A stretch of DNA of 63,936 bases, filler included, from Octopus bimaculoides (taxonomy: Eukaryota), in NCBI RefSeq assembly GCF_001194135.2. It is 6 parts of 6 records of this genome, joined end to end, with 100 filler letters (N's around TTAATTAATTAA, not from the genome) between each part and the next. Parts side by side here need not be neighbours in the genome. Positions count along the whole stretch, not along the records: positions 1 to 21,039 come from NC_068991.1; 5 more parts are not named here. One strand, given 5' to 3'. Of the stretch, positions 5,141 to 26,738 are shown piece after piece. The notes beneath the pieces were generated by a model. It searched no databases. It had not been told where the DNA came from and worked only from the letters and a program-made list of their open reading frames with translations. Within the stretch, counting starts at the first letter, position 1; each line of letters starts with the position of its first letter. The position numbers were made by a program, and so were the translations under genes.

Positions 5141-5549
5141 ATCGATATTACTGTGTTAAATGAGAACAAATGCAGCAGCCTTTGTAATTACGAAGTTTGT
5201 ACTACCTGAGATCTATTGATTATAGAATATCAAAGTACAAACTACAACGAAAACAAATATACAGAAAGAAATAGAAAATAAGGCATTAATGAAATCAATA
5301 ACAAAAAAGATAAAACAAGAAAAATAAAACTATCAAAAGAAAGGGAATAGGAAACAAATGCTACAGAAATATTTTTTCTAATTTTGGCTCAGCAGTTTTG
5401 TAGGGAGAGGGCATGTTGTTTACATCGACCCACGTACTCGACTGGTACTTATTTTATTTGCCCTTCATAAATAGCAAAAGACAACCCAAGTCAATGAAAT
5501 GTTTTCTAACAAGCCCAAGTACACTTGTCAACAACACGAAACCGACAGT

Positions 5550-6420
5550 AAAAAAATGTGGAGACCAAACTGGGTTTGTACTGACAGAGGGGATTACTGG
5601 AAGCATGCAAATGCTTTTGTACACCATTATGTCAAACGCGGTTACAGTGAATCACGATTAAAGGAAATAGCAAATGAGATAGCTAAGATTAGCAAAGAAA
5701 GTCAAAGCTACATGCATAATTTTAGCAAACACAATACAATATGTGACATAATCCCTTTAGTGATTAACTGGCACCGAAATTTCGCTGGTATTTCAAAAGT
5801 GTTGCATGAAAGTTAACAGCATGTTGCGGAAAGTATCCTCGTTTCAAACAGATATTTCCTCAACCGCCTATTGTAGCCCTTAGACAGAATAAAACTATAA
5901 GAGATCTATTGACCACTATTTCTGACTCCAAGAAAACTAACATTGGAGTATCTTCACGCTGTACCTTGAAAAACAACCGCAAGAAAGGTAAGTCCTGTTC
6001 ATTGTGCAACAACATGAGTGAGGTGAATTCCATCAGGAATCATAACAGAAATGTTATGATTTATACAGAAGGTGAGACATGTAGAAATTCTCATTTAGTG
6101 TATGCGGCAGAATGCACGAAACAACTTGGTTTATGTTGGTTATACAACAGAACAATTAAACAAAAGGTTTAATGGGCACAGATTCGACGTCAGGCACAAT
6201 AACAGTAGTTCGACAGAACTTGCCGAACATTTTGTTTCAAACGGCTGCAATTTTGAAAAAGACTTGAAAGTGCACATTCTCAGAAAATATTCTGAATCTG
6301 CTACACTTTCAATACTCAAAATGTATGAGGAGAAATAGGTTTGCGGGTTATTAACATCACGCTCTGGCGGAATGGATAAAATGACAGAATATCATCAAAT
6401 TTATGCAGAAATGTTTGATT
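5550..6420 (+). mobile_element. Penelope-like element remnant (thumb/linker + GIY-YIG endonuclease)
   Basis: Disrupted frames read HYVKRGYSESRL, IPLVINWH, CSLC, LVYAAEC, YVGYTTEQLNKRFNGHRFD and LAEHF. This is the characteristic PLE C-terminus. Confidence 0.85.
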
Positions 6421-7496: not shown

Positions 7497-7703
7497 CTAT
7501 TGTAATACCATGACGATTCCTGCTTGACAGAACAGCAACAGTCTAAGTGGCGAAGGAAATAATGCAATAACGGACGTCATTGTCATACAGGAACGGTAGA
7601 GCCCTCTGTTGTTGATCGGCTGAAGTGGTCGGAAGTTGTTTCCCAATAATATTCTCGGTCCTCCCGCGCCGTGCTCAGACAACAGAGAGCGAAATATTTC
7701 AAG
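7497..7703 (-). CDS. alpha-carbonic anhydrase-related protein, terminal exon F (phase 0-stop)
   Basis: Acceptor tataattacag. 207 nt encoding LEIFRSLLSEHGAGGPRILLGNNFRPLQPINNRGLYRSCMTMTSVIALFPSPLRLLLFCQAGIVMVLQ*, with the CA C-terminal motif N-x-RP-x-QP-x-N-x-R followed by a hydrophobic tail. Confidence 0.93.
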   Translation of the reverse strand, partial: LEIFRSLLSEHGAGGPRILLGNNFRPLQPINNRGLYRSCMTMTSVIALFPSPLRLLLFCQAGIVMVLQ

Positions 7704-7789
7704 CTGTAATTATATGTAGTGTGCGTGCGTGCGTGTGTGTGTGTGTGTGTGTGTGAATATGAGAAGAGAAAGAAGGAAAAGAGATTAAA

Positions 7790-8320
7790 AATCCAGGCAG
7801 ATATCAATAAAGCACCCAGCTTTAAACAAATTTGGTTAACTATATCCAACAATCAGAGACCAGTAAATGCAAGTAGAATACACATCCAAGGTAATTCCTC
7901 ATGTATGACAAGTCGATCCAAATACCATTTCGAAGAATTTCGAGAAATTCAGAGTATTAGACAATGAAAATACGTTTAGAGAAAATCACATTTTTTCAAA
8001 GCCGACAATTGTGTTATTATCTAGGTTCATGTGCCATAATTTGGAAATATAAATTTCATAACCATTCTCATTCATTTAAGTATAGAAGAAAAGGTAATTC
8101 TACAAATTTTAGTAAATGCATTTGGGATTTAAAAGACAGAAATATTAAGTATGATTTAAAGCGGTCCATTATTAGTTACGCACCATCGTACAATATTGGT
8201 AATTCTACATGTGAACTTTGCCTTAAAGAAATATATTAATTGTATTAAATTTTAATGAAAATTTGACAAATGAAATGTTGCCACAAATTTTAGAAGACAT
8301 TTAAATGTTTCATTTCTTAA
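7790..8320 (+). mobile_element. Penelope-like GIY-YIG remnant in the last intron of the CA-related gene (antisense)
   Basis: YYLGS..KYKFHNHSHSFKYRRKGNSTNFSKCIWDLKDRNIKYDLKRSII..YN..CELCLKE matches the PLE endonuclease tail. Confidence 0.8.
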
Positions 8321-8799
8321 TTATAACTGATTTTCATATGTTATATAATAATTTTCATAAAAAAAGTTTACTATATTTAATAAAGAGATAACTAATTGTC
8401 GTGACATAAAATCTGTTTCTATTTATCGTAACGTAGAATTCCTATGTTTAATTTTTTAATTCTTTCGTTATCAACTAACGTCACCAGTTGTTGAATTCAA
8501 AAATAGCTTTTCTTAAGATTATATTTCTACTTCGCGTTCTTTTTGTGTGCGTTCGTGTACTAGAACTATTTCCTTAGTTCACTTTGAATTTAATTAAATT
8601 TGGATCACCTTGAAAACGTTGGGTTAACATGTATTTTCGGAAATATCAATTTCAATGATATTTTCGATATCTAGATATGTTAATACAACAGAAACAATTG
8701 TCGACTTTGTAAGATGAATTCTACAATTAAAGATGATTTTGTGTGTGTGTGCTGCAAGGTCAATATGCCAACCGCTTATTTTTGTATCTCTTACCATAC

Positions 8800-8957
8800 C
8801 TGTCCAGTGGAAATATGAACTGTTTCCCAAAGTATTATCCAGGTAACTCCTTCTCTGCAAGGTGGGAATGTGACACTGCCCCGATAGGTAATAAAACAAG
8901 ACCGGTTCCTCGGAAGAAAAGCTTCTAGATTCCAATTTTTCACACGATACTGATTAT
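8800..8957 (-). CDS. alpha-carbonic anhydrase-related protein, exon E (phase 1-0)
   Basis: Acceptor atcttctttacag and donor CAG|gtatgg. 158 nt encoding (D)NQYRVKNWNLEAFLPRNRSCFITYRGSVTFPPCREGVTWIILWETVHISTGQ, matching the CA motif Y-x-GSLTTPPC-x-E-x-V-x-W. Confidence 0.95.
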
Positions 8958-9161
8958 CTGTAAAGAAGATATATATAAGTTTATATAAATAAGGATAAGA
9001 TCGTTATATATTTATATATTTACTTCCGTCATTATATTCACTGCGGAGGTATTTTGACCATATCACACGAGGAGTTTAGGCGGGTAATTTAGACTGGTCG
9101 TGTGCATACGTGCATATATATATGTGTGTGTAAACGTGCGTATATGTAAGTATTCGTATGT

Positions 9162-9196
<35 letters not shown>

Positions 9197-9217
9197 ATTT
9201 ATGTACTATTTGTGTGT

Positions 9218-9275
9218 ATTCCACTGATGAGGCAAAACATTTCTTATGCAAACCCAGAAATCCGGGATCTGGAAT
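9218..9275 (+). ncRNA. type I hammerhead ribozyme motif (Penelope/retrozyme type)
   Basis: attcca(9218-23)-CTGATGA(9224-30)-stem II region-GAAA(9257-60)-tccggga-TC(9268-69)-tggaat(9270-75). Stem I is a perfect 6 bp. There is one unpaired A at the base of stem II. Confidence 0.6.
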
Positions 9276-10222
9276 TATCCAATAATTTTTTGCTAGTTTG
9301 TTTTGTCTCTTTGTCTTCTCTCCTAATGCTATATGAACATTTTATGTGGTTTTAAAGTCAAGTTTTGGCTGCTATATCTAGCATGGTGGTATCTTTTAGA
9401 TACCCTTAATTATAATTTTGATGTCATATATANNNNNNNNNNNNNNNNNNNNNNNNNNNNNNNNNNNNNNNNNNNNNNNNNNNNNNNNNNNNNNNNNNNN
9501 NNNNNNNNNNNNNNNNNNNNNNNNNNNNNNNNNNNNNNNNNNNNNNNNNNNNNNNNNNNNNNNNNNNNNNNNNNNNNNNNNNNNNNNNNNNNNNNNNNNN
9601 NNNNNNNNNNNNNNNNNNNNNNNNNNNNNNNNNNNNNNNNNNNNNNNNNNNNNNNNNNNNNNNNNNNNNNNNNNNNNNNNNNNNNNNNNNNNNNNNNNNN
9701 NNNNNNNNNNNNNNNNNNNNNNNNNNNNNNNNNNNNNNNNNNNNNNNNNNNNNNNNNNNNNNNNNNNNNNNNNNNNNNNNNNNNNNNNNNNNNNNNNNNN
9801 NNNNNNNNNNNNNNNNNNNNNNNNNNNNNNNNNNNNNNNNNNNNNNNNNNNNNNNNNNNNNNNNNNNNNNNNNNNNNNNNNNNNNNNNNNNNNNNNNNNN
9901 NNNNNNNNNNNNNNNNNNNNNNNNNNNNNNNNNNNNNNNNNNNNNNNNNNNNNNNNNNNNNNNNNNNNNNNNNNNNNNNNNNNNCCTCAGTCGAGTTCCA
10001 GATCATCTTTGCAATTTCAGCTGGTTATACTCGAGATTGCTCCAATCTGGCCAGCCCCAAGGAAAAAATAAGCTAAGTGCATTAGATTCCTTGGAAGAAA
10101 GCAGCGAATGTATATGAAAACAAGGACGGAAAAAAACGGAGAATGTTACACAAATACAAATAACAGGACATAACAACAGGTGTCTTTCGACCAAGGACGA
10201 ATTAAATTAAGCTGGTGTTGTC

Positions 10223-10261
<39 letters not shown>

Positions 10262-10934
10262 ATTTAAATAAGAGCCATAACGCAATCCATAATAAAACTT
10301 GTTTAATAACCTATGCACATTGCAATGCAAGATCCCGGCTCATTCTGAGATAAGAATATGGAGTTTTGCATCTCTTCAGGGTCAAGTTACATCAATTCAC
10401 AGCAGACAGCAAACAGCAGACAACATTAATTGTTGTACTTAAATTACATGTGTATAAAAGAGTTATAATCAGGTTGTAACGACATGAACATATTGAAACT
10501 GCTTACAATATCGGTTAAGAAAACCGTTATATAGTAAAGTAACTAAGTAGAGTAGTTAACCTAGGATGTTAAGTAGCGACAAGCAATCGACGCTGTAAAT
10601 TCAATAAAAACCGTTGGACTTTTGAAAGTAAATAAAACGAAGAAAGAAAATTATCTGTTATATATCTTAATAAAAAATGTAAATTGAAGGTCAAAGAGAG
10701 GTAAATCTAGTAAATAATATTTTTGATTTATATAATTCACTCAATTGTGAATAATCATATCAAATAATTATATTTATTTTTAAGTTTAGAATAGTTATGA
10801 GACTTGTTTTAAGGTTATGTAAACAAGATAAATTAGAAAATATGAATTATAAATAATAAAATAAAATAAATAAGGTTACAAGTCAAGTAATTTATTCACT
10901 AGTTAATACCAAGTTCATCCATCCACCCATTATT

Positions 10935-11270
10935 TCTAGAAGGATCGTTGGGGTAGAGTGGTGAAGTATCTTCTCCATAAGGTCCTATCAGAAGCAACCT
11001 TCATTAGACTTTCCGGATGAATTCCCAAGCTTGACCATCTCGTTCGTGGTGGTCTGCTCATCAGTCCCCTGCCGGTTGGTTTAGCTTGAAAAACCCGTCT
11101 TTCGATTCTTTGCTGCAGCATTCTAATCAGATGTGCGTAGTATTAGAGCCTTGACCTCTCAGTGCAGTGAAGTAGCGGTTTGACCTAGAGAGACTCTCTG
11201 ACCTCCAAGCTTCGAACACTGTCAAGTAATGTTACTCCAGAGACTCTTTGGAGGAACCCCGTTTGAGATG
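10935..11270 (-). mobile_element. RTE-clade LINE 3' remnant
   Basis: RRVFQAKPTGRG..RPPRTRW..LG..VASDRTLWR resembles the RTE ORF C-terminus. Confidence 0.7.
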
Positions 11271-11476
11271 CTTGTATTCGTTATGAAAAATAAATTTCTC
11301 TAAAAATCTTCGTAGTTGCTATAGCGGAGGTAAGAGAAAGCTGACCCTTTATTCCTGAAGCGGCAAGGAACCGTGTTTTCTTCTCGCAGAAGAAAACCAC
11401 TCTAAAACTCGCTATCTGTTTTTTAGTGTAGCCCACTATAGTTACTCGGAGTAGATACTTAAAAATTACGATATAC

Positions 11477-11543
11477 CTTTAAAATTTATCATTCTCAAGT
11501 TATTGATTATTTCATGAAATGCACTATTTTCAATGACGCCAGT
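11477..11543 (-). CDS. alpha-carbonic anhydrase-related protein, exon D (phase 0-1)
   Basis: Long polypyrimidine acceptor ...ttttttttctaattttcag and donor AAG|gtatat. 67 nt encoding TGVIENSAFHEIINNLRMINFK(D). The phases bridge exons C and E exactly. Confidence 0.85.
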
Positions 11544-11789
11544 CTGAAAATTAGAAAAAAAAAATGAAAAGAAAAGTTTAAAAGAAACAACTAAAAGTAC
11601 AATGAAAAGTATAAAACTGATATGAAGTAAAGTTTTATTGTATTTGGATCTTGTGGCAAAAGTGACTAAAAGAGAATACTACAAGTAGCTTTTATTATGA
11701 TGTTGACCCAGGGCAATCCGTTCGGCCTTTTGTCCAACCATCCATTCAACTATCCATCCGTCCATCCATCCATCTATCCACCCATGCAC

Positions 11790-12140
11790 CCATCCGTAGG
11801 CCACGGGTTATGATCTCACTTGGCTTGCCGGGTCTTCTCACGCACAGCATATTTCCAAAGGTCTCGGTCACTAGTCATTGCCTCAGTGAGGCCTAATGTT
11901 CGAAGGTCGTGCCTCACCACCTCATCCCAGGTCTTCCTGGGTCTACCTCTTCCACAGGTTCCCTCAACCGCTAGGCTGTGACACTTTTTCACACATCTAT
12001 CCTCATCCATTCTCGCCACATGACCATACCAGTGCAGTCATCTCTCTTGCACACCACATCTGATGCTTCTTAGGTCCAACTTTTCTCTCAAGGTATTTAC
12101 ACTCTGTCGAGTATGCACACTGACATTACACATCCACCGG
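11790..12140 (-). mobile_element. RTE-clade LINE 3' end (young), truncated by gap
   Basis: RWMCNVS...LREKL...QERRLHWYGHVARMDEDRCVKKC..VEG..GRGRPRKTW..VVRHDL..LGL...DRDLW, with no disruption seen. Confidence 0.92.
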
Positions 12141-13411
12141 NNNNNNNNNNNNNNNNNNNNNNNNNNNNNNNNNNNNNNNNNNNNNNNNNNNNNNNNNNNN
12201 NNNNNNNNNNNNNNNNNNNNNNNNNNNNNNNNNNNNNNNNNNNNNNNNNNNNNNNNNNNNNNNNNNNNNNNNNNNNNNNNNNNNNNNNNNNNNNNNNNNN
12301 NNNNNNNNNNNNNNNNNNNNNNNNNNNNNNNNNNNNNNNNNNNNNNNNNNNNNNNNNNNNNNNNNNNNNNNNNNNNNNNNNNNNNNNNNNNNNNNNNNNN
12401 NNNNNNNNNNNNNNNNNNNNNNNNNNNNNNNNNNNNNNNNNNNNNNNNNNNNNNNNNNNNNNNNNNNNNNNNNNNNNNNNNNNNNNNNNNNNNNNNNNNN
12501 NNNNNNNNNNNNNNNNNNNNNNNNNNNNNNNNNNNNNNNNNNNNNNNNNNNNNNNNNNNNNNNNNNNNNNNNNNNNNNNNNNNNNNNNNNNNNNNNNNNN
12601 NNNNNNNNNNNNNNNNNNNNNNNNNNNNNNNNNNNNNNNNNNNNNNNNNNNNNNNNNNNNNNNNNNNNNNNNNNNNNNNNNNNNNNNNNNNNNNNNNNNN
12701 NNNNNNNNNNNNNNNNNNNNNNNNNNNNNNNNNNNNNNNNNNNNNNNNNNNNNNNNNNNNNNNNNNNNNNNNNNNNNNNNNNNNNNNNNNNNNNNNNNNN
12801 NNNNNNNNNNNNNNNNNNNNNNNNNNNNNNNNNNNNNNNNNNNNNNNNNNNNNNNNNNNNNNNNNNNNNNNNNNNNNNNNNNNNNNNNNNNNNNNNNNNN
12901 NNNNNNNNNNNNNNNNNNNNNNNNNNNNNNNNNNNNNNNNNNNNNNNNNNNNNNNNNNNNNNNNNNNNNNNNNNNNNNNNNNNNNNNNNNNNNNNNNNNN
13001 NNNNNNNNNNNNNNNNNNNNNTATATATATATATATATAAACAGACAAGCAGTTGGTATCAGGTTAGATTATAGCATTTATATATCTAAGTATGGGTGTT
13101 CATCATAAGGAGGACGGAAGTAAGACTATATGCAGACAATATTTTACACCTTATTTCAAGAACAGATGCGCAGATGGTGCATTTCCCTGCAAACGATCCG
13201 AAAGCGACATTAAGGCAGTCATCTACTCCATCATCAGAGGAAGAATGAAATAGAGCATTAGTAGCGAGCTTTGGTCTACTACAAGTGTAAGTGTAGAGGA
13301 AGTTAATATCCCTAATTTTAGTTGCAGTTCAAGTTGGAGTTTTAGGCAACAAGGTAACCTGAGCACTAATCGTATGGACCTATTACTTTACATCATCAGA
13401 CGTTATATTAC

Positions 13412-13452
<41 letters not shown>

Positions 13453-13478
13453 CTCTCTCTTACACTTTTGTTGTTTCT

Positions 13479-13533
<55 letters not shown>

Positions 13534-13633
13534 NNNNNNNNNNNNNNNNNNNNNNNNNNNNNNNNNNNNNNNNNNNNNNNNNNNNNNNNNNNNNNNNNNN
13601 NNNNNNNNNNNNNNNNNNNNNNNNNNNNNNNNN

Positions 13634-13697
<64 letters not shown>

Positions 13698-14416
13698 TGG
13701 GTAACCATGTGTCTTCTCTATAGCAAGACACCCATTTCTGCCTCTCTATTTCTGTTACACTCTAACCTTTCATCATCTGATACCAGACCACCTCTAATAC
13801 CACCTTTGTTGTGGCAAGACACCTGCTTCTGTCTTTTTGTCTCTTTGTCATACTCTAACTTTCATCCTCTGACACAAATGCCTTTGTCCCTCTCATTATT
13901 CCTTGTCTTGCGAGTTACTTGGTTACCATGCCAATGCTAGTGCCAGGTTAAAAGCATCCAGTCCACACTGTAACGTGGTTGGCGTTTGAAAAGGCATCTA
14001 GCTGTAAAGATCACGCTAAAACTAACCTCACCTGTGCTAGTGCTATGTGAAAAGCACCGAGTCCACTCTGCAGAGTGGTTGATGTTCGGAAGGGCATCCA
14101 GTCGTAAAAACCCGCCAAAACAGACACATTAGCCTAGGATAGTTTTTCTACCTGGTCGGCTCCTGTCAAACGTCCTACCCATGCATGCATGGAAGACGGA
14201 CGTTAAACGATGATGATGATGATGATGATGATGATGACGGTTTTAAAAATATCAGATTAACACCTATCTTATGGAAGATACGAAGATTTTCCATCTGGTT
14301 TATGTTAATCTGTTTGAAGTTATATTTCAGATCATTTTTAATTTTTAGAGAAAATTTTCAAAATAATGAGACTGTATCATGAACTTATTCTTAGATTTTT
14401 TTATATGTATGAATAT

Positions 14417-14461
<45 letters not shown>

Positions 14462-14658
14462 GGTAAGTGTTTGTGTATGTGTATGTATGTGTATATGTAT
14501 GTATGCATGTATGTATGTATGTATGTATGTATGTATGTGTACATGAGTATGTATGTATGTGGAGTGAGAGAATAGTGAAGAGAGAGGGGAGTGGGAGAGG
14601 GGGAGTGTGTGAGAGAGAGAGAGAGAGAGAGAGAAATGCAAAAAGAAAGAATTCTTAC

Positions 14659-14751
14659 CTGGACGAAGTAAGCAACTACTACAAGGCTGTGTCCTTTTTT
14701 CCAGGCCAATTGCTCAGAAGTAAATTTATAAGAATAATGGTAAATTTGAAC
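14659..14751 (-). CDS. alpha-carbonic anhydrase-related protein, exon C (phase 0-0)
   Basis: Acceptor tctatttag and donor CAG|gtaaga. 93 nt encoding VQIYHYSYKFTSEQLAWKKGHSLVVVAYFVQ, which aligns to the CA segment LHLVH...DGLAVLGIF with His119 read as Gln. Confidence 0.9.
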
Positions 14752-15084
14752 CTAAATAGAGAAGGAATGATGGCCAAATAAGGAGGAATTCAGTTAGTGA
14801 ATCAATGGTTACAATTTTTTCTTTTAAATAGAATCAGCTGTGGATACATTGGAAGGATTTTGCATTACAGTCGTGCTGGTATCATCGTTATTATCTTCTT
14901 TGCACACTTAATCCTGAGACAGTCGTGCTGTTGGAGGGGCAGAGCCCTTAAGCTAGTCTTCCATCGGGTCCTGTCAGAAAAACCACCGTCTCCAAACGAT
15001 CAGATTGTATCCGCAAGCAAGACTAACTGAGCTTCTGCCCTTAAAACCAGCCCGGCAATCCTTTCTCGAGACGTTCTTATCAGG

Positions 15085-15862
15085 CGTGGCTATATGGAAA
15101 GAAGCTTGCTTCCCAATCACATGGTTCCAGGTTCAGTCCCACTGCGTGGCATCTTGACTGAGTGTTTTCTACTATTGCCTCGGAACGACCAAAGCCTTGT
15201 GAGTCGATTTGGTAGACGGAATCTGAAAGAAGCCCGTCGCATATATATGTGTGCGTGCGCGTGTGTGTATCTATTATCTTTTATCCCTTACCTGTTTCAG
15301 TCATGAGACTGCGGCCATACTGGGGCACCCCTTGAATTTTTAGTCGAATGAATCCAACCCAGTACTTGTTTTTTAAACCTGGTACTTATTCTATCGGTCT
15401 CTTTTACCGAACCACTAAGTTACGGGGACGTAAACACACCAGCACCGGCTGTCAAATGGTGATGCGGGTACAAACACACACACATATATATATATACATA
15501 CATATATACACTAGCCCAAGGTGCCACTCAGTGGGACTGAGCCCGGAACCCTATGGTTGGGAAGCAAACTTCTTACCACACAGCCACTCTTGATAATACT
15601 TACATACATACATACATACATACATACACACATACATACATATCCTTTTATTCTTTTATTCATTTACATATTTCAGTCATGTGACTGTGGCCCTGCTGGA
15701 ACAAATCGACCCCAGGACTTATTCTTTGTAAGCCTACTACTTATTCTATCGGTTTCTTTTGCCGAACCGCTAATTTACGGGGACGTAAACACACCAACAT
15801 CGGTTGTCAAGCAATAGTGGGGGAGAAACACAGATATACAAATACACACACACACACAAATA

Positions 15863-15898
<36 letters not shown>

Positions 15899-15960
15899 TA
15901 CATATATCTATATATACGACGGGCTTCTTTCAGTTTCCGTCTACCAAATCCACTCACAAC
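15085..15960. mobile_element. cluster of family 3 SINE heads and tails
   Basis: Plus head at 15085-15240; minus tails at 15280-15480 and 15660-15840; minus head pieces at 15510-15590 and 15915-15960. Confidence 0.75.
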
Positions 15961-17019
15961 ATTTAAATATTTTGGTCGTGTACTACGGACATATCTTTTA
16001 TCTTTTACTTGTTTCATTATTAGACTGCGGACATGCTGGGGCACAACATCGGAGAATGCATTTATGTATGAATATGTGTATGTATGTATGTCTGTATCTG
16101 TATCTGTGTGTGTGTGTGTGTGTGTGTGTGTNNNNNNNNNNNNNNNNNNNNNNNNNNNNNNNNNNNNNNNNNNNNNNNNNNNNNNNNNNNNNNNNNNNNN
16201 NNNNNNNNNNNNNNNNNNNNNNNNNNNNNNNNNNNNNNNNNNNNNNNNNNNNNNNNNNNNNNNNNNNNNNNNNNNNNNNNNNNNNNNNNNNNNNNNNNNN
16301 NNNNNNNNNNNNNNNNNNNNNNNNNNNNNNNNNNNNNNNNNNNNNNNNNNNNNNNNNNNNNNNNNNNNNNNNNNNNNNNNNNNNNNNNNNNNNNNNNNNN
16401 NNNNNNNNNNNNNNNNNNNNNNNNNNNNNNNNNNNNNNNNNNNNNNNNNNNNNNNNNNNNNNNNNNNNNNNNNNNNNNNNNNNNNNNNNNNNNNNNNNNN
16501 NNNNNNNNNNNNNNNNNNNNNNNNNNNNNNNNNNNNNNNNNNNNNNNNNNNNNNNNNNNNNNNNNNNNNNNNNNNNNNNNNNNNNNNNNNNNNNNNNNNN
16601 NNNNNNNNNNNNNNNNNNNNNNNNNNNNNNNNNNNNNNNNNNNNNNNNNNNNNNNNNNNNNNNNNNNNNNNNNNNNNNNNNNNNNNNNNNNNNNNNNNNN
16701 NNNNNNNNNNNNNNNNNNNNNNNNNNNNNNNNNNNNNNNNNNNNNNNNNNNNNNNNNNNNNNNNNNNNNNNNNNNNNNNNNNNNNNNNNNNNNNNNNNNN
16801 NNNNNNNNNNNNNNNNNNNNNNNNNNNNNNNNNNNNNNNNNNNNNNNNNNNNNNNNNNNNNNNNNNNNNNNNNNNNNNNNNNNNNNNNNNNNNNNNNNNN
16901 NNNNNNNNNNNNNNNNNNNNNNNNNNNNNNNNNNNNNNNNNNNNNNNNNNNNNNNNNNNNNNNNNNNNNNNNNNNNNNNNNNNNNNNNNNNNNNNNNNNN
17001 NNNNNNNNNNNNNNNNNNN

Positions 17020-17320
17020 AGTGGCTGAGCACTCCACAGACACGTGTACCCTTAACGTAGTTCTCGGGGATATTCAGCGTGACACAGTGTGACAAGGCTG
17101 ACCCTTTGAATTACAGGCGCAACAAAAACAGGAAGTAAGAGTGAGAGAAAGTTGTGGTGAAAGAGTACAGCAGGGTTTGCCACCATCCATTGCCGGAGCC
17201 TCGTGGAGCTTTTAGGTGTTTTCGCTCAATAAACACTCACAACGCCCGGTCGGGGAATCGAAACCACGATCCTATGACCGCGAGTCCGCTGCCCTAACCA
17301 CTGGGCTATTGCGCCTCCAC
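17020..17320 (-). mobile_element. tRNA-derived SINE (family 1), gap-truncated
   Basis: High identity to 990-1286. Confidence 0.85.
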
Positions 17321-17520
17321 ACTGCAGTATACTTTGTTCTAACAGAACATCTATGTTTAAGTGGGGATAAATATTACCTCTCGGTATTAATACTGCCTCT
17401 GTCGCTAATACATGTATGTATATATGTGTGCGTGTGTGTGCGGGTATACGGTCGCGTGTGTGCACTTTACAAACATACAGTTATATACTCACATCACCAA
17501 CAAATATAAGTTACACCTAC

Positions 17521-17666
17521 CTCCATTGGGTATCGCCGTCCTTCAAGCAAATGTTCTGATCCTATAATATCTACGGATCCCCAGTGGAAAGCCATTTTAT
17601 GTGCAATATACATTTCGGTCAGTCCTCCACCTTGCAAATGCAAACCTTTCTGCAGTTTCAACGTCA
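17521..17666 (-). CDS. alpha-carbonic anhydrase-related protein, exon B (phase 1-0)
   Basis: Acceptor cctattgttattgcag and donor GAG|gtaggt. 146 nt encoding (V)TLKLQKGLHLQGGGLTEMYIAHKMAFHWGSVDIIGSEHLLEGRRYPME. GGGL, FHWG, GSEH and YPME are CA motifs; canonical QFHFHWG reads KMAFHWG here. Confidence 0.95.
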
Positions 17667-18329
17667 CTGCAATAACAATAGGTCGAAAACTTCAGATTTT
17701 GATGGATGGATGCGTTTTCATATGTGCTGAGTCATCGTGAATGCAGTGTTGTATGAGGCATGTTGCAATGGCGATGCGATGCAATGATTTTTGGTGGTTG
17801 TGTTGAGTATTAGTATGAGGAGCAATAATAGCGGTAGCAACAGCAACAACAACTGAAACAATAACAGCAAAAACAACAACAATAACAATAATAGTAATAA
17901 TGATGAAGATAATGATGATTTCTTTTATTTCCTACCAGGACAGGACGGCAAGTGAGGGGGACAACACAAAGACGGACATAAAGTGTGGGAACTTACATAG
18001 AACGGATACGATTTACGAAATAAATACAAGTATACATTGTACTCAATATTGATTTCAAATTTTGGCATAAGGCCTAAAAGTTCAGGGATGGGATAGGTCG
18101 GTTAAATCGACCCCCCCCCACTCCCACCTATTACTCAACTGGTACTTATTCTATTGACCCAGGGTGGATGAAAGGCAAAGTCAGACCTCGGCGGAATTTG
18201 AACTCAGAACGTAAAGACGGGCGAAATGCCGCTAAGTATTTTGCCCAGTATGCTAACGATTCTGCCAGCTCGCTACCCTTACATTGAATACAATATCAAC
18301 AAAACAATAGGAAAAAAGAATGATAGTGA

Positions 18330-19060
18330 TGCGATCCTCCAAGGACAGAGAACATCTATGGACAATCTAAGAACACTACTAAGCAATATCTATCCATGTA
18401 CGAACTAAAGCCCGTTACCGTTTTCGGCCCATCACTTTCTCCAAACAGTCACGCGAAGTACTGCTGGAATGTCACACACATCTGCTCGGAACCGAGTAGC
18501 ACTCGCCGGTCCCGATCCATCAAAGACCCGATCGTAGTTTTGTTGCCAAGTCGCATCTCCACCATTCGGGCCCATAGGACGGTTTTAATTCCTTCATGTT
18601 AGAACGCACGAGTTTTAGCTCCGACAACGCAACGCAACCTTCGTGTTTCGCCTCAAAGAAATAGTCAAGGGCTGTTCTCGTCGCTAGCACATCGGTTGCA
18701 ATGTCTTTACTAATCATTTCTCCAAGTTTGCCAACTAGCTCTCCTTCTAATCGATTTCTTTCTATTGCAGACTCTTTGCTAAACGCTATTGATTCTACTC
18801 TAATCGTCCTCTTCATGGCGACAAACCGGTTGTTGACGATTGTGTCTCCCCCCCCCCCCNNNNNNNNNNNNNNNCCGTCAACTGCCGCTTAGCTAATTCG
18901 CTAATCCGGTCTCTGTAGTCCTTGCGTGCCGGAAAGGATGTGTTCAACTTCCAGTTGCCGAGTACCTGTCAACGGAGCCTATCTAAATCGACTGTGCAGA
19001 TTACAAGTTGTGGACAATCTATGCTGTCATTATCTGTTGCCCTACCAAATACTAGATCTA
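18330..19060 (-). mobile_element. Tx1/L1-clade LINE ORF2 remnant (end of endonuclease + linker)
   Basis: VDLDR..GNWKLNTSF..DYRDRISEL, then KRTIRVESIAFSKE..LEGELVGKL..ALDYFFEAKHEGC. Confidence 0.75.
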
Positions 19061-19767
19061 GATACGATGTGAATGATCTATTGTGGTTGCTCGCCGCCTT
19101 TGATAATAATAATTACAATACCAGCAAAGACAACGACAACAACAACAACAACAACAACAATCCTTTCTACAGGAGGCACAAGGCCTCAAATTTGGGGACA
19201 AGATTAAGTCGATTACATCGACACCAGTGCGTAACTGGTACTTATTTAATCGACTTCGAAAAGATGAAAAACAAAGTCGACCTCGGCGGAATTTGAACTC
19301 AGAACGTAGTAGCAGACGAAATACTGCTGAGCATTAACGTCCAGCACGCTAACGATTCTGCCATCTCGCCGCGTAATAATAATGATAATAATGTCAACAG
19401 AACGACCGCAACAGCAACAAATACAACAAAATGAATAGTCAAAGGACCATAATGGTCTGTCTTTGCGCATACACACGTCTCTATTCCAGTGTTTGCGTGC
19501 GTGCGTGTGTGTGTGTGTGTGTGAGTGTGTGTGTACGACCACTTTGGAAATAGCAGCCAAATCTGCCTCAAATAGGACACATTGTATAATATAGTAGGTT
19601 CTAGGTATACTAGAGGTCACAAATTAATTTTCTGTACTCGAAAATTTACTCGAACAGGGCTGATCCGGAGCCATTGCTTCCAACAACAACAACAACAACA
19701 ACAACAAAAACAACAACGACCATAACGTCGTCCATGACGACGATGGCGACAACGACTAAATTATCAC

Positions 19768-19932
19768 CTGTGTGTCCCGTGTTAGTCATTGTTAAATTAG
19801 ACGCTGTGTTCGAGTATCCCGAGAAAACCAGTTCACGGTGTTTCACGTATCTGGTGTCTTTAAGATAAATACTTATTGGCGACTGTCTTCTGCCACCGCA
19901 CGAAGGATATTCGTTTTCCCAGTCTTTGTTGT
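19768..19932 (-). CDS. alpha-carbonic anhydrase-related protein, exon A (most 5' confident exon, phase 1-1)
   Basis: Acceptor tttttttctcctttgcag and donor CAG|gtgata. 165 nt encoding NKDWENEYPSCGGRRQSPISIYLKDTRYVKHRELVFSGYSNTASNLTMTNTGHT(V), with the alpha-CA motifs C-x-G-x-x-QSPI and N-x-GHT. Confidence 0.93.
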
Positions 19933-20049
19933 CTGCAAAGGAGAAAAAAAGGATCTTTATGATTTGACGGCCAACGCTTGTTTTCTTAACGAAACCCTAA
20001 AGATCCGAAAAAAACAAAAAAAAAACAAACGTAAAGCACATGTAATACA

Positions 20050-20102
<53 letters not shown>

Positions 20103-21083
20103 ACACACGTACACACACAGATACAGACGTACATACACATATTCATACATAAATGCATTCTCCGATGTGGCGCCCCAGCATGTCCGCAGTCTAATAATGA
20201 AAAAAGTAAAAGATAAAAGATATGTCCGTAGTACACAACCAAAATATTTAAATGTTGTGAGTGGATTTGGTAATGTAATTGTCATGCTTTTAGAGAAAAT
20301 GACATTCACACCTAGTTGTCAAAGTCCCACCCAGATACAGACTTGTTGGACATCGTTTCTCTTTTCCCTTTCTAACGCCAATAGAACAGTTTCCGTTCAT
20401 CCCAAAATGCAAGGATAGGGAAAACTGAGTGAAGGTTCTCGTGTCGGATTGAGAAGGGGCGGACCTTAATCTCATCACGAGACTTTATCATCTGGTTGAT
20501 AACTAATGAAGAATTAGGAACCTTCTGTGTCTGTCTCCTGTCCGGTTGTAAACTTCGTATGCGTTAATACGTTTTATACCTGCCATTTGTTTATTTACAA
20601 TACAACTTTTCATTTTTATTCAGAACCCGACATTCTCGTAATTTTTTTCGTATCCGTAATACGATCTTTTTGCATTCACTGGTCTATAGAATTTCATACC
20701 ACATAACTGTATCGAACTCACCAATCTCGGAGACTTGGCAAGGGCCGTGTGCTGCCAGAGGCCTCTACTAATCAATAAGACACTTACGCACACGCATATA
20801 CACGCACACACATACATGCACAGAAGGGGTTAGGCATCCACCAAGTAATCACTAGGAACAGCAGGAATAAAGCATTCCACTTACCTACGTGATAGCTCCA
20901 CCCTGCAAAAATTAAAAGCAAATTTTAACTTGGAAAGATGTGACAGCCATTTGCATCTACAGCACGGTAAAACTAGTAACTAAATAACTAAAATAATTTC
21001 CATTCACCTTGCAATTATACACACACACACACACACACANNNNNNNNNNNNNNNNNNNNNNNNNNNNNNNNNNNNNNNNNNNN

Positions 21084-21095
21084 TTAATTAATTAA
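21084..21095. other. assembly gap spacer TTAATTAATTAA inside an N-run (also near 39163, 42829, 47884, 62047)
   Basis: The identical 12-mer is centred in five ~100-nt N blocks and gives stops in all six frames. Confidence 0.9.
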
Positions 21096-21402
21096 NNNNN
21101 NNNNNNNNNNNNNNNNNNNNNNNNNNNNNNNNNNNNNNNTTTTCCGTATCTGCAATACTTTTTCAATATCTCCAGTAGGCACGAATTTCATATCCATCAC
21201 TAAAAATATTTGATTCTTGCTCTATAGAGAAATATTTGATGATATATAAAAATAAAAAAAAGAAATAGAACTTAGAAAATCTGAAAATTTGTCTTTTTTG
21301 TAAAAGGTGTCTCTGGAGGTGTCTCCTCACAGCATAAGGAAGTTTATTTTGTTTATTTCTTTTTTACAAAGCCGTTGGGTAAAATTGCTTTCAGCAGTTA
21401 AC

Positions 21403-21483
21403 AATAATAAAACTTTGAGCGGATATATCCGTTTTCTGCCTTCAAAGTGTTAAACGTGGGTCTAAAGACAACATGGACTCCGG
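21403..21483 (-). CDS. candidate upstream exon of the CA-related gene (phase 1-1)
   Basis: Strong acceptor tttttttcattgcag and an open frame GVHVVFRPTFNTLKAENGYIRSKFYY(Y) that joins exon A in frame. The donor (T|gttaac) is weak. Confidence 0.3.
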
Positions 21484-22968
21484 CTGCAATGAAAAAAATT
21501 CTCCTAAGAGAATTGAACTCAAGGGATTTTATAAGCCTGCCAAAACGTTCTATAACGTTCCATAAGATGTTTTTAAGCAGAAAAATTAGACATTTTCTGA
21601 CTGTCACTGCCTATTACAAACTAACGTCACGGAGGATTAGCTGAATATTGCCAGATATAGTATTATTATTATTCATCAGTGGTAAATATATCTAAGTCAA
21701 TATTGTCATATGCTGTATTTTTAGCATATAAGTTGACGTAGTGTACACATTCAAACATTAACACTATCTTTTCAAATCCTGCTGCATATCACTTGGAATT
21801 TTAGATCCTCCAAAGTTATCTGATGTATAAGCCAACTGACCTTTTCAGATGTAAATTTTGGTCTGAAAAGTTCTTCTTGTATGGTAGAAAATGCTGTATA
21901 GAATATTCTTTTCTACTCTAGGCATAAGGCCCGAAATTTTGGGGGAGGGGACCAGTCGATTAGATCGACCNNNNNNNNNNAGGCATAAGGCCCGAAATTT
22001 TGGGGGAGGGGACCAGTCGATTAGATCGACCCAGTACGCAACTGGTACTTAATTTATCGACTCCGAAAGGATGACTTGCAAAGTCGGCCTCAGCGGAATT
22101 TGAACTCAGAACGTAAAGACGGACGAAATACCGCTAAGCATTTTGCACAGTGTGATAAAGTTTCTGCCAGCTCGCCGCCGCCTTACCGTATAAAATATTA
22201 TTCGCCAACGGTTCTGGCTTTCGAATTTAAAGCATTCCTGGTTTGAATTCGAGAAAGTCTATTTTTTACAAAGCAACAGTAAACTAATGTTCTCGTGTTA
22301 TTAAACGCGTGTATTTAGTATGAATATAGTGCAGAAGGCAAAAAATTGCAATGAAACTCACGGCAGATTTAGAACAGAAAATTACAAATTTTCACCGATA
22401 TCTCATTAGAAAGAAGGGGCAATACATCAACGTAGAATTGGATTAAGAATATAGCTGAAATACCTTGCTTTTGCGTTTTTGTTTTTTTTTTTTGTACGCC
22501 TACCAATAAAGCTGCTGATACCAAAGGTAAAAAGTGCAGGTGATAAAGAACAAATCCAAGTTCATAGTCATATTAAGCTACCTTGCTTTCAGAACCGAAT
22601 TATAACCAATGTTTATTTTTAAATGAAAAACAATGATAAATATAAAGTTCCCTTTTGGTGATTTCGTTCACGTCTGCTAGAAAGGTTGGATGGCTGAATT
22701 TGGAATACATTCATGCATTGAAATTGTGTAGAAAATGCCTCCAGGTTGTTTAAGAAGGTGAAAAAAAAACTTGTTAATTGGAGCACGTTCAGATCCCATT
22801 TAACAAACAATGTCAAGAAACATCAAAAACGAAACAATTCTATTACTGAGGAACCCCCCCCCCCCTGGTCAGGAGCATTAATGTCTACGCTGCATTCTTT
22901 CGATGTAAACTTAAATCTTTTAAAGACAATGTTTGTTTCGAATAATACTGTAGTGGCGCGAAATTATA

Positions 22969-23090
22969 GCCGCCATTGAGGAAGTACTATTCTGCGCATG
23001 CGCAGGGGACTTCACCACCGGAAGCCTCTCGAGTTGCACATGCGTAGTAAAACTCGTACTTAAGCAGTTAGTTTCAATTTCTCGGTGAGT
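22969..23090. promoter_or_regulatory. candidate promoter: YY1-, NRF1- and ETS-type motifs plus a splice donor
   Basis: GCCGCCATT at 22969-77, palindrome CTGCGCATGCGCAG at 22992-23005, CCGGAAG at 23018-24, GCACATGCGT at ~23036-45 and G|GTGAGT at 23085, all in a locally CpG-richer patch. Confidence 0.5.
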
Positions 23091-23369
23091 TGAGTTCAGA
23101 CCTACATGACAACACCTCGCTCCTCCACGAAGCATTTTTACACTGTTCTCTGGCAGGCATCAAGGAAGACCTTAACCTTCCATTACCAAACCACAATTTA
23201 ATCAGCGGCTGCTAAGCTGAATGACAGGAATTTGTATAACCAAGTATCATCCTAAATAAACCTTTTTATTATGTTGTTAATTGTTCTGATGTCTCTTCAT
23301 TTGTAATGCTGTTGAAAGGTGATAGAGAGAGACTAACGTCTCGATGACAAATATCATAACTATTGCAAT

Positions 23370-23800
23370 ACAAATGGATGGTTGATGGAGAAGGTCATCA
23401 ACAAATGGCAGTTATGTATGCGGTCCAACACAAAGTATATTGTGCAATTTTGAATAAAGTCTTGAGGAGGTTTCCGTGGAAAGAAATGTTGAAATTGGAG
23501 CTTCAAATGCAAGGAATGGGTAAAAAGAGCATTCTTTTGGGAAGGAACTGTGGAAAAGAAGTATAGATTCCTAAGTAGAATTGGGAACTTTCAATAATTC
23601 AGATCTTTTGTAGATTCCTTTATACCAGAGGATGAACGTATTTACTGCAAGATTTGGAAACTTTATCATATATGGGATTATTTTTTGGCAATAACAAATA
23701 TCTAATACAGAAAGCGGGAAAAAATGTTGTAATATTGCCAGCGAGATTCGAATGCTGCGACTGCTGTAATCCACAAAGCTGTACTAATGCTTACACCAAA
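23370..23800 (+). mobile_element. RTE-type apurinic endonuclease remnant
   Basis: Decayed frame VCGPTQ..NFE..LEEV..VEIG..NARNG..FGK....TFNNSDLL, which parallels AYAP / FYE / GDFNA.G / IGK.G / N.L in RTE endonucleases. Confidence 0.5.
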
Positions 23801-23972
23801 GCGACATCACAACACTTCACGTCTAAATTACAATGCTTAACACCAACGTAGCTAAGTTTACGCATACCAGGGTCAGCGGCCTTTCAACAGGAATCTCAAT
23901 ATACACAGTATCAAACAATGATACATGTATATAATTTACGCGCGCGCACGCACACACACAAACACACACACA

Positions 23973-24053
<81 letters not shown>

Positions 24054-24169
24054 CGTTATTAACCTTGGAAATAAAATCTCTAAAGTATTTATGATTTGTG
24101 TTTCAAAATTGCTGTATCACTTACCGAAGATTTTTATTGCCAATAAAATAACTTTCAAATGAAGTTCAT

Positions 24170-24900
24170 TTTAAGAGTTCTACTAAATAATGCCATAAAA
24201 ATGCCAATGTGTGTATATTCAATAAACTGTTACTATTTATAATTACAATGTCATTACAACTATAGTACTTGATAAACGTTATCTTTCTCTGTAGGTTAGT
24301 CACATTAAGGAATGACTTTAACAGGTCTTTGTAATGGCGAAAGATCATTCTCGTGGTCTTTTCCAGGTGGTTATTTCACTAATGAGGACATGACATGGAA
24401 ATCTCACTTCCTTCGCTCTGACCATATGTTCTATCATAGCTGGTATTTCATGATTACTTCTATGCTTCCACTGTTGGCTTCTTTTAGGAAAGCATTACTG
24501 GTTTTGTAGTCTGCCCTTTTGATATTTAAGAAGGCGCAGTTTCTTTTTCTTTTGCTGGTGGAAACGTTCCAGATTTTTCACAGCCGTATGACGACATTGA
24601 AAAAGCATAAGTTTCGTTTTTGGAGTGGTTAGATGTTTGTTCTCTGTAAGTGTTCCCAAATGCTGAATGGGTAGATCTAATTCTGCGTTCCACACCATTT
24701 TACAGAAGTTCATTTATTGGACTGAACACTTTCAAAATAAGGAAAATGATCGACTTGTTCAACAGGTGTATCAGATATGGTGATATTGAAATGAGGGAGG
24801 TTGATCTTTGAAGCAGGTTGAGCGAGGACTTTGGCCTTTTCTATATTCACTGTGAGACTGTCACACATCTGCCGCCAATCTGCTAGAAACTTCAAGCAGC
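24170..24900 (-). mobile_element. RTE-clade (BovB-like) RT/3' remnant
   Basis: LTVNIEKAKVLAQPA..ITISDTPVEQVDHFPYF, ENKHLTTPKTKL, KNLERFHQ and RHYKDLLK. Confidence 0.8.
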
Positions 24901-25524
24901 TCCTGACTAGAAACTTCAAGCAACTCCAAACCTGTTTCTATCTTCTTTGTCCCATCGATGTTGTGATTTTCAAGTAAAATAAGATAAAAACATTGAGGGA
25001 AAATAGCCATTATAATATAGACACAAGGCCTGAAATTTTGGTGGAGTAGATAGTCGAGTGCATTGTCCCCACTTCAAGACCCCCAAAGTACACATATATG
25101 TATTGATATGTGTGTATGTGTGTGTATATATATATGTGTGTGTGTGTAAATATATGTATTTGTGTCTGTGTGTGTGTGCGTGCGCGAGCGCGTACAAATG
25201 TATGTATATATATGTATGTATGTGCGTGCCTTTACGTTTGACATAGTTTCGTGCCTATATCCCGTAACCTTACCACTGCACTAAACATACATTGCTAAAA
25301 TAGGAACCAGACCCAAAAGTAAGAACTGAGGCAGTGGGGGTGGGGATATGAACAGATAAAATTCCTTTATATTTTATACGGGTTGATTCAGAAGTCCTGG
25401 TAACATTTAAATAAGTTAAAATTTTAACTTTTTCATTTATTAGAGATTTTGTTTTTATATATATATATTTTAACACCATCTTAGCTACTTTGTTGTGTAT
25501 ATATTTTGGTGAAATAATCTTTCT

Positions 25525-25910
25525 ACTTTAGGCACAACGCCCGAAATTTTGGTGGGAGCGGGGACAGTCGATTAGATTGAGCCCACTACGCAACTGGTAC
25601 TCAATTTATCGACCCCGAAAGGTAAAGTCGACCTCGGCAGAATTTGAACTCAGAACATTAAGACAGACGAAATACCTATTTCTTTACTGCCCACAAGGGG
25701 CTACACACAGAGGGGACAAACAAGGACAGACAAACGGATTAAGTCGATTATATCGACCCAGTGCGTAACTGGTACTTAATTTATCGACCCCGAAAAGATG
25801 AAAGGCAAAGTCGACCTCGGCGGAATTTGAACTCAGAACGCAGTGGCAGACGAAATACCGTTAAGCATTTCGCCCGGCGTGCAAACCGTTTCTGCCAGCT
25901 CGCCGCCTTA
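25525..25910 (-). mobile_element. tRNA-derived SINE (family 2), tandem dimer
   Basis: Same two-module structure and spacer as 4222-4600. Confidence 0.85.
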
Positions 25911-26738
25911 CACACATGTATATATATATAGAGAGAGAGAGAGAGAGGGAGAAAGCGAGAGAGAGAGATACAGATATGCATACAAGACATAAATACAAAC
26001 ATATATATAGAGTGTAGGAGAGAGCTTAGTGCAAATATGCGTTTGTTAACTATGAATGTGTGTGTGTGTATGTGTGTGTGTGTGTGTGTGTATGTGTGTG
26101 TGTGCGTGTGTGTGTGTGTTTATGTCAGTAGGTCCAGGGTAGAATGCTACCAACAGTCTGTTACAAATAATCGATGCATTGATAAATGGTTCAGCAAGTT
26201 TTTCTCATTTATACGATTGAGCAATACAATGCCTGAGCCACTATAAATATCCATGTTTTCATACAATTGCGAATATTACTACTAAGACTTCAACAGCTGT
26301 ATACCCACTTTTTATTTAACAGCTTTTCGATGGAATTTTGGGGCAGTTACGTGGGGATGCTCGATCACCTAGAAATAGCAGCTAAATTACTATCAAATCA
26401 CATCCCACCGCTGTATATAAAGGACGGGACACGTTACCCACAAAAGACGAGACTACTGTCTAGAATGTCATTCTCTGGAATATTTGACTCGATCGCTGTT
26501 GTCCAGGATCTAAAAGAGAACAACAACAACAACAACCGCCTACTGATCTGGTTTTATGGTTTTCTCTGATCATCTCCTCAATGAGCTTACACGATCGCGC
26601 AAATAAGATATCAGATAGTGAACTCATAGGTCGGAGATTGTTACTTTCTTATCGGTGCAGAGACGACTCAGTAACCTTGACACGTAGATGCTGCACGTAG
26701 AGCTGCAAATTGACAACATAGAGAAAGAACTATTTAAT

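Follow-up and report, generated by a model that had tools for sequence, protein, structure and literature searches.

The carbonic anhydrase (CA)-like domains of PTPRG and PTPRZ are ligand-binding modules for contactins. Proteins that have the alpha-CA fold without one or more of the zinc histidines are defined as CA-related proteins (CARPs; PMC2873310), and CA8, CA10 and CA11 are acatalytic through the loss of these zinc-binding residues (PMC2873310). Two of them, CA10 and CA11, are secreted neurexin ligands (PMC8024894, PMC6487704). Acatalytic CA-fold proteins form a recognised class (CA8/10/11, PTPRG/Z and many invertebrate cases), and the gene described here opens no new biological category. 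We analysed this gene in a stretch of Octopus bimaculoides DNA of 63,936 nt (hereafter the window, i.e. six parts of assembly GCF_001194135.2 joined end to end), where it lies on the minus strand within the part that comes from NC_068991.1. The supplement of PMC6639325 gives it as ObCA3 (Ocbimv22006872m.g), and in a tree of PMC5618409 it figures as 'ObiCA9X'. ObCA3 is not a new gene, being already in RefSeq under a CARP name; it is a lineage-specific addition to a known class.

The interpretation that we favour, with a probability of about 0.62, is that ObCA3 is an intact eight-exon gene encoding a CA-fold pseudo-enzyme of the secretory pathway, i.e. a CARP that evolved independently from a local duplicate. 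An earlier note on this DNA had described an intact spliced gene of six exons (about 277 codons). All six exons were borne out on the minus strand (836 nt, i.e. 277 codons plus the stop), with canonical AG/GT boundaries, compatible phases, a polypyrimidine tract before each AG acceptor and a GT donor at each internal exon; the 5' end of that model was incomplete, as two further exons exist upstream. The full coding sequence amounts to 933 nt (310 aa) in eight exons of 79/18/165/146/93/67/158/207 nt. The features are as follows, exons 1 to 6 keeping the numbering of the six-exon model and L001 being the ObCA3 locus record.

L001 5710-5788, outside the window beyond an assembly gap: signal-peptide exon, 79 nt, encoding MVGKKTFKMVHLMATFSGMLLISLVS, donor CAG/GTAGTT.
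20902-20885, minus strand: 18-nt micro-exon, GG TGG AGC TAT CAC GTA G, acceptor tttttgcag/, donor /gtaagt.
19932-19768, minus strand: exon 1, 165 nt, beginning in phase 1; an exon of the same size is present in the paralogue ObCA4 and in its O. sinensis orthologue OsCA4.
Within exon 1, minus strand: Cys23 at 19900-19898 (PSCGG at 19906-19892), the QSPI motif, the NLT sequon at 19798-19790 and His64 (TGHT).
17666-17521, minus strand: exon 2, 146 nt; the GSEH that then follows carries Glu106 and His107.
17598-17578, minus strand: motif KMAFHWG of exon 2, with Lys92, Ala94 (GCT, 17592-17590) and His96.
14751-14659, minus strand: exon 3, 93 nt, opening with VQIYH (14751-14737), i.e. Gln119 (CAA, 14748-14746) and Tyr121.
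11543-11477, minus strand: exon 4, 67 nt, encoding TGVIENSAFHEIINNLRMINFK; the paralogues have a 73-nt exon here.
8957-8800, minus strand: exon 5, 158 nt, with the in-frame donor CAG/GTATGG.
Within exon 5, minus strand: NRS sequon at 8907-8899; GSVTFPPC (PPC at 8865-8857) with Thr199, Phe200 and Cys203 (8859-8857).
8795-8799, minus strand: 5-nt extension of exon 5, added when the competing donor ATG/GTAAGA is chosen.
7703-7497, minus strand: exon 6, 207 nt including the TAG at 7499-7497, with the last CA strands LEIFRSLL...NNFRPLQPINNRGLYRSC.
About 7589-7500, minus strand, within exon 6: hydrophobic tail MTMTSVIALFPSPLRLLLFCQAGIVMVLQ.
N runs in the introns: 18860-18874 (between exons 1 and 2); 16132-17019 (exons 2 and 3); 13534-13633 and 12141-13021 (exons 3 and 4); 9433-9984 (exons 4 and 5).

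The alpha-CA fold that the earlier note had proposed held when checked against Pfam PF00194, which matched in one stretch over about profile positions 4-253 of 254 (E=6.6e-71), a value that chance could not give. The score of 239.7 bits (cut-off 27) is 18 bits lower than that of the His-complete paralogues (257-258 bits). A structure predicted with AlphaFold2 from the 277-aa form, i.e. without the 5' extension, was a confident CA fold (predicted local distance difference test, pLDDT, 94.1; predicted template modelling score, pTM, 0.88), with the predicted ten-stranded central beta-sheet of this family. Using Foldseek, the top structural matches of this model in the PDB were CA XIV, VII and II, with template modelling (TM) scores of 0.85 when query-normalised and 0.89-0.92 when target-normalised; the best of them was the CA XIV ectodomain (TM 0.85 query, 0.91 target, root mean square deviation 1.3 Å). 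By sequence, the best solved relatives were CA6, the CA-like domains of PTPRG/PTPRZ, CA9, CA12 and CA14.

Active-site residues were numbered by alignment to human CA II, the reference being checked as 100 % identical to the CA II of the PDB. As had been read before, only His96 is left of the zinc triad: His94 is replaced by Ala (GCT) and His119 by Gln (CAA), giving the triad A-H-Q. With its CA fold and two of its three zinc-ligand histidines replaced, ObCA3 falls within the functional definition of a CARP. Further changes relative to CA II are Gln92 to Lys, Val121 to Tyr, Leu198 to Val and Thr200 to Phe, and the residues retained are His96, His64, Glu106, His107, Glu117, Tyr194, Thr199, Trp209, Asn244 and Arg246. 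A site reduced to a single imidazole ligand most likely fails to hold the catalytic zinc, and ObCA3, which would then have lost both zinc binding and catalysis, is taken as a pseudo-enzyme. Among the zinc-site mutants of human CA II that were measured, H94A brought the greatest loss of zinc affinity (PMC10175565). A rescue of the histidines by adenosine-to-inosine editing, for which a check of RNA reads had been advised, is ruled out by the codons themselves, since GCU contains no A and CAA can only yield CGA, CAG or CGG, which are not His codons. Among 368 collected CA domains, the triad was H-H-H in 308 and x-H-Q was the commonest non-catalytic state, so that the state of ObCA3 is a recurrent outcome rather than an oddity.

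In order to place ObCA3, homologues were sought by exhaustive HMMER over 1.84 billion representatives, plus word-indexed searches. In the HMMER search, the closest match was an O. bimaculoides 'CA 12' (P0057; 47 % identity), all others being at 38 % or less. The full isoform of this paralogue is ObCA4 ('carbonic anhydrase 12 isoform X1', XP_014780512; P0179), a protein of 326 aa that is 48 % identical to ObCA3. The two genes lie on the same chromosome, head to head and about 45 kb apart, ObCA3 at CM046611.1:17,311,695-17,323,987 (minus strand) and ObCA4 at 17,373,312-17,389,557 (plus strand). ObCA4 resembles ObCA3 in its eight-exon layout with a micro-exon, its signal peptide, both sequon positions, four cysteines and a homologous tail. 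Exon sizes are 73/18/165/146/93/73/158/255 in ObCA4 and 76/18/165/146/93/73/158/252 in the O. sinensis orthologue OsCA4 (P0194); the spans used were 10001-26246 of locus record L002 for the former and 10001-56015 of L003 for the latter. All three zinc histidines (His94, His96 and His119) are present in ObCA4 and OsCA4, and only His96 in ObCA3.

A neighbor-joining (NJ) tree was inferred from 56 CA domains, a set with no vertebrate CA10/11 sequence. ObCA3 grouped with (ObCA4, OsCA4) with a bootstrap support of 98 %, and a Pecten protein of the CARP clade fell outside this group. The suggestion of the earlier note that the protein might be lineage-specific is thereby upheld: its sister is the adjoining catalytic-type octopus CA and not the CARP-clade representative present in the tree. 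Since this sister is a His-complete neighbour, the loss of the zinc site followed a local inverted duplication and is independent of that in CA8/10/11 and PTPRG/Z. The duplication took in the 5' flank, as about 580 bp around the ObCA3 start (L001 5214-5794), i.e. promoter-proximal region and signal exon, are 67 % identical to the region of the O. vulgaris paralogue (locus record L004, 39911-40515). ObCA3 is thus a clean and datable example, in which the catalytic parent still adjoins head to head a copy that has no zinc site and converges on the PTPRG/Z pattern. The two genes also make a convenient natural pair for asking what the CA fold does without zinc, including by back-mutation.

The 5' end of ObCA3 was completed with the help of these paralogues. 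Since exon 1 begins in phase 1, something must lie before it. The micro-exon, which sits about 950 nt upstream and is absent from both the six-exon model and RefSeq, fits this phase, and its product (G)WSYHV(D) is the W-x-Y start of the mature alpha-CA domain. A homologous 18-nt exon (AWDYHN) is found at the same place in both paralogue loci. The product of the signal-peptide exon, MVGKKTFKMVHLMATFSGMLLISLVS, shows basic n-region residues followed by a hydrophobic core and is homologous to the N-terminus of the paralogue, MEKTFWMVYLMATFSAMLFVHLVS. ObCA3 thus carries a predicted N-terminal signal peptide, as a secreted or membrane-type protein requires. With both additions confirmed by the closest paralogue, the RefSeq models prove to be 5'-truncated. 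A first candidate for the signal-peptide exon, at L001 6856-6904 (MFVFLAILLLSLSVLH), was dropped in favour of the exon at L001 5710-5788, which is the one homologous to the N-terminus of the paralogue.

Other traits expected of an extracellular CA, all of which had been noted from the sequence, were found again. The extracellular-type cysteine pair is kept (positions 23 and 203), NLT and NRS are the sole two sequons of the protein, with sequons at both positions in ObCA4 (NAT, NQT), and the protein ends in a hydrophobic tail with homology to the tail of the paralogue. The same set of traits, i.e. signal peptide, Cys23-Cys203 disulfide, N-glycosylation and C-terminal hydrophobic segment, likens ObCA3 to CA4/CA15, which are glycosylphosphatidylinositol (GPI)-anchored, and to the type I transmembrane CA9/12/14; these differ from it in being active enzymes with a full His triad. 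The last 17 residues form a helix in the AlphaFold2 model and the protein ends with LLLFCQAGIVMVLQ; the hydrophobic stretch spans about 13-17 residues. No cytosolic residues follow it, and a small-residue triplet that would clearly make an omega site is not apparent. The tail of ObCA4 is 18 residues longer, ends in HKYRPTEW and looks like a transmembrane segment with a short cytosolic stub. A hydrophobic helix without cytosolic residues could be either a GPI signal or a tail-less anchor. Membrane tethering of ObCA3 is plausible, the sequence being compatible with GPI anchorage, a transmembrane segment or no anchor at all.

We propose the following course of events. An inverted local duplication of the neighbouring membrane-type CA (ObCA4, 'CA12-like', with three zinc ligands) would have given ObCA3, after which His94 would have changed to Ala, His119 to Gln and the second-shell Gln92 to Lys, with the bulky Tyr121 and Phe200 filling the CO2 pocket. 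The signal peptide would target the product to the endoplasmic reticulum, with a putative cleavage around SLVSG/WSY. There, the protein may be stabilised by the Cys23-Cys203 disulfide and N-glycosylated at the two conserved sequons. The short C-terminal hydrophobic helix (GPI signal or tail-less membrane anchor) could then lead to display on, or release from, the cell surface, where the former active-site face may serve as a binding surface instead of a catalyst.

It is also conceivable, if unlikely, that ObCA3 is a decaying duplicate, i.e. a very young or incipient pseudogene whose open reading frame (ORF) is open by chance and whose products are non-functional. The loss of two zinc ligands would agree with decay, and several other observations weigh against the interpretation that we favour. 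The first one concerns the C-terminus, which is shorter than that of the paralogue: a small frameshifting indel after ...GIVM put TAG TAA in frame and removed the last 18 residues of the paralogue (DNSYFWYLVLHKYRPTEW); the DNA that encoded them can still be made out in the 3' untranslated region of ObCA3. (An earlier account of the short tail from the protein alignment, i.e. an 8-aa deletion and a Lys-to-stop change, was overturned by the DNA alignment that showed this indel.) The second one concerns splicing, since the canonical donor of exon 5 is weakened (CAG/GTATGG versus CAG/GTAAGG in the paralogues) and a C-to-T change made a strong second donor, ATG/GTAAGA, 5 nt downstream. The paralogues have GTAAGGCAAG at this junction, without the second GT, and thus the canonical donor only. 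On a rough consensus score based on position frequencies, the two donors of ObCA3 would be about equally strong. The use of the second one reproduces exactly RefSeq isoform X2 (...HISTGQVCLKYF...VPV), in which the last exon is frameshifted and ends at a TGA (7585-7583), the final strands and the tail being lost; both donors are therefore represented among RefSeq isoforms.

The pace of evolution of the subfamily points in the same direction. Between ObCA4 and OsCA4, the ratio of nonsynonymous to synonymous substitution rates (dN/dS, omega) is about 1.2, with 71 % amino-acid and 86 % nucleotide identity and introns 83-93 % identical, which suggests that the subfamily evolves fast and that constraint may be weak. 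For an intact CA, such a rate is in itself unusually high; it could stem from positive selection or from relaxed constraint. Furthermore, no annotated orthologue of ObCA3 was found in O. sinensis or O. vulgaris by word-indexed and exhaustive HMMER searches; in cephalopods, these searches brought up only the orthologues of the paralogue in the two species and, in Argonauta, CAs that are unrelated. Upstream of the paralogue, 10 kb were covered in O. sinensis (L003), and a 42-aa C-terminal fragment of Pellino, used as query for the syntenic O. sinensis locus, gave no match. In O. vulgaris, the locus record (L004, OX597824.1) extends 40.4 kb upstream of the paralogue and contains no ObCA3-like exon. 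This stretch shows neither presence nor absence of the gene, since the two genes are about 45 kb apart in O. bimaculoides and the O. vulgaris DNA ends about 5-8 kb short of the expected position. Finally, human CA II with the single change H119Q remains active (work of Lesburg et al. 1997, cited in PMC6639325), so that the main grounds for an acatalytic ObCA3 are His94Ala and the loss of both ligands at once, together with Q92K.

What speaks against decay is the age of the duplication set against the integrity of the gene. ObCA3 and ObCA4 differ by dN 0.44 and dS 0.95-1.3 (omega 0.34-0.46), whereas dS is 0.13 between ObCA4 and OsCA4; the duplication is thus about 7 times older than the split between O. 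bimaculoides and O. sinensis. Despite this depth, all eight exons are open, the 14 splice sites all have the canonical form, five exons have the same length as in the paralogues, and no pseudogene sign (premature stop, frameshift or broken splice site) was found in the canonical frame over the 8 exons and 933 nt. When the neutral evolution of a 310-codon ORF was simulated, it stayed open with a probability of 0.007 at 0.13 substitutions per site, a value that fell to practically zero from 0.25 onward. All family-invariant residues are kept, including those of the fold, as are both disulfide cysteines and both sequons, the Pfam score is just 18 bits under that of the paralogues, and the ObCA3 branch is no longer than, and about equal to, the paralogue lineage in the NJ tree. 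Moreover, the paralogues have CAC (His) at codons 94 and 119, so that Ala94 takes at least two nonsynonymous steps and the loss of the zinc site is not very recent. Taken together, these observations speak for a folded protein under long-term purifying selection.

That ObCA3 is still an enzyme, with a remodelled metal site (His96, the Gln119 carboxamide and water or another ligand) providing some CO2 hydration or esterase activity, appears quite improbable. Much of the catalytic apparatus is indeed kept, namely the His64 proton shuttle, the Glu106-Thr199 gate, Glu117, His107, Tyr194, Asn244 and Arg246, and His-to-Gln or His-to-Asn swaps of ligands leave human CA II active according to the work of Lesburg (1997) as PMC6639325 cites it. 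However, Ala94 is no ligand and H94A is the most damaging of the measured zinc-site mutations of CA II (PMC10175565), two of the three ligands are lost and so is the second-shell Gln92, and the substrate pocket is crowded by Tyr121 and Phe200. The x-H-Q state, in addition, also marks the non-catalytic PTPRG/Z domains and many CARP-like domains.

The reading of ObCA3 as a pseudo-enzyme raises the question of its resemblance to these domains. At positions 92, 94, 96, 119 and 121, a pattern of Lys, non-His, His, Gln and an aromatic residue is common to ObCA3 (K/A/H/Q/Y), PTPRG (K/E/H/Q/F) and PTPRZ (K/L/H/Q/F). The CA-like domains of PTPRG/PTPRZ1 also have the Cys23-Cys203 pair and are among the best PDB sequence matches (E about 1e-39 to 1e-37). 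ObCA3 differs from them in keeping His64, where PTPRG/Z have Lys, and in standing alone, its stop coming 30 residues after the CA domain with no FN3, transmembrane or phosphatase part. Its grouping with PTPRG/Z received a bootstrap support of 22 % only. A longer PTPRG-like gene was considered and rejected: stop-to-stop ORFs of at least 70 codons on both strands contained no domain beyond transposon remnants, and the RefSeq gene ends at the same stop after the CA domain. Downstream, the gene is bounded by a convergent Pellino gene (518 aa, with Pellino FHA and RING; L001 31912-32293, about 9.6 kb beyond 7497 and hence past position 1 of the window), which also offers a synteny anchor for locating the orthologue in other cephalopods.

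The best non-octopus matches to ObCA3 (35-38 % identity) are the second, x-H-Q domains of tandem-CA proteins from gastropods and other invertebrates, e.g. those of Arion vulgaris (A0A0B7AKW3), Bradybaena and metatranscriptome proteins (P0038/P0042). Several of these domains are A/V/I/N-H-Q, which indicates that such a loss is recurrent in molluscs. These proteins differ from ObCA3 in being multi-domain, and the tree does not group them with it.

As a hypothesis only, a binding role could be proposed for ObCA3 by analogy with the PTPRG/Z-contactin and CA10/11-neurexin pairs (PMC8024894). A bolder version, which we regard as a long shot, would be that an octopod-specific cell-surface pseudo-enzyme, starting from a catalytic membrane CA, has re-invented the ligand-binding face of PTPRG/PTPRZ (Lys92, Gln119, aromatic 121) for adhesion or recognition (e.g. 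of a contactin-like immunoglobulin protein), the two exon-5 donors switching between tethered and truncated forms.

The RefSeq names of the gene suggest yet another origin. From Met47 onward (MTNTGHT...), the protein of the six-exon model is identical to XP_014786583.1, i.e. 'carbonic anhydrase-related protein 10 isoform X1' (230 aa), and a second model, XP_014786584.1, named 'carbonic anhydrase 9 isoform X2', has its first 163 residues in common with X1. That ObCA3 is a CA10/CA11 orthologue, i.e. a secreted neurexin-type ligand from the bilaterian ancestor, is nevertheless most improbable: the name of X1 and Gln119, which is common to CA10/11, would agree with it, but isoform X2 bears the name 'CA 9', which marks the names as best-hit artefacts, the adjacent His-complete paralogue is by far the closest relative (in sequence, bootstrap, signal peptide, tail, promoter-proximal DNA and layout), the mollusc CARP-clade protein (Pecten P0027) is just 32 % identical and outside in the NJ tree, and position 94 is Ala and not the Arg of CA8/10/11. 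The vertebrate CARPs CA8/10/11 hence have a separate origin, ObCA3 differing from them also in its C-terminal hydrophobic tail.

The public models of ObCA3 are thus 5'-truncated and bear misleading names ('CA 9', 'CARP 10'), and published trees have treated one of them as if it were an ordinary alpha-CA. Neither PMC6639325 nor PMC5618409 comments on the zinc site of ObCA3/ObiCA9X, and literature searches by locus name and on octopus salivary-gland CAs returned nothing specific to this gene. The corrected model of 8 exons and 310 aa should be useful for annotation.

The DNA of the window has a eukaryotic character, with about 39 % G+C, many microsatellites and five N gaps, and the reliability of the exons between these gaps was assessed. 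Between exons 3 and 5, eight 67-nt stretches flanked by AG and GT are open, and exon 4 is the sole one of them to fit the CA profile; it is preceded by a long polypyrimidine tract, it was recovered by tblastn and the Pfam match passes through it unbroken. On either side of every gap, the exons share one strand, are colinear and follow the order of the profile, and no segment of the Pfam profile is absent. Exon number and sizes agree with those of the paralogue loci, which are free of gaps, so that the gaps conceal no coding exon. The chromosome-scale assembly consists of the same contigs re-scaffolded, with identical gaps, and both intron lengths and physical continuity across them are therefore provisional. 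On the 3' side, the first AATAAA lies about 640 nt downstream of the ObCA3 stop, at 6861.

Several repeats were observed in and around the gene. In its 3' flank, overlapping frames at 5475-6335 (plus strand) end in a GIY-YIG-like motif (VYVGYTTEQLNKRFNGHR; PF01541, E=2.7e-4, just under the cut-off), and this segment looks like the remnant of a Penelope-like retroelement. Two intronic frames on the minus strand (11819-12037 and 10939-11142) resemble by eye the tails of non-long-terminal-repeat retrotransposon ORF2 (LHWYGHVARM...RGRPRKTW) and have no Pfam match. An interspersed repeat of about 300 bp is present at 989-1287 and 17020-17321 in direct orientation (93 % identity), with many copies in the O. 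vulgaris locus, and a pair of inverted repeats of about 190 bp (93 % identity) is found at 15942-16131 and 20079-20272.

Two further observations concern the orthologues of ObCA4. The O. vulgaris 'hypothetical predicted protein' P0267 (L004 10001-70265) is a chimeric and partial model of the ObCA4 orthologue, with an unrelated N-terminus of 120 aa and skipped exons, the true start exon being at L004 40434. In O. sinensis, a second copy of the terminal exon of the paralogue is present at L003 61137-61352, about 5 kb downstream of the annotated stop. Its protein is about 39 % identical to the tail exon of ObCA3 and nearer to the ObCA4 version, and it could be a duplicated or an alternative last exon.

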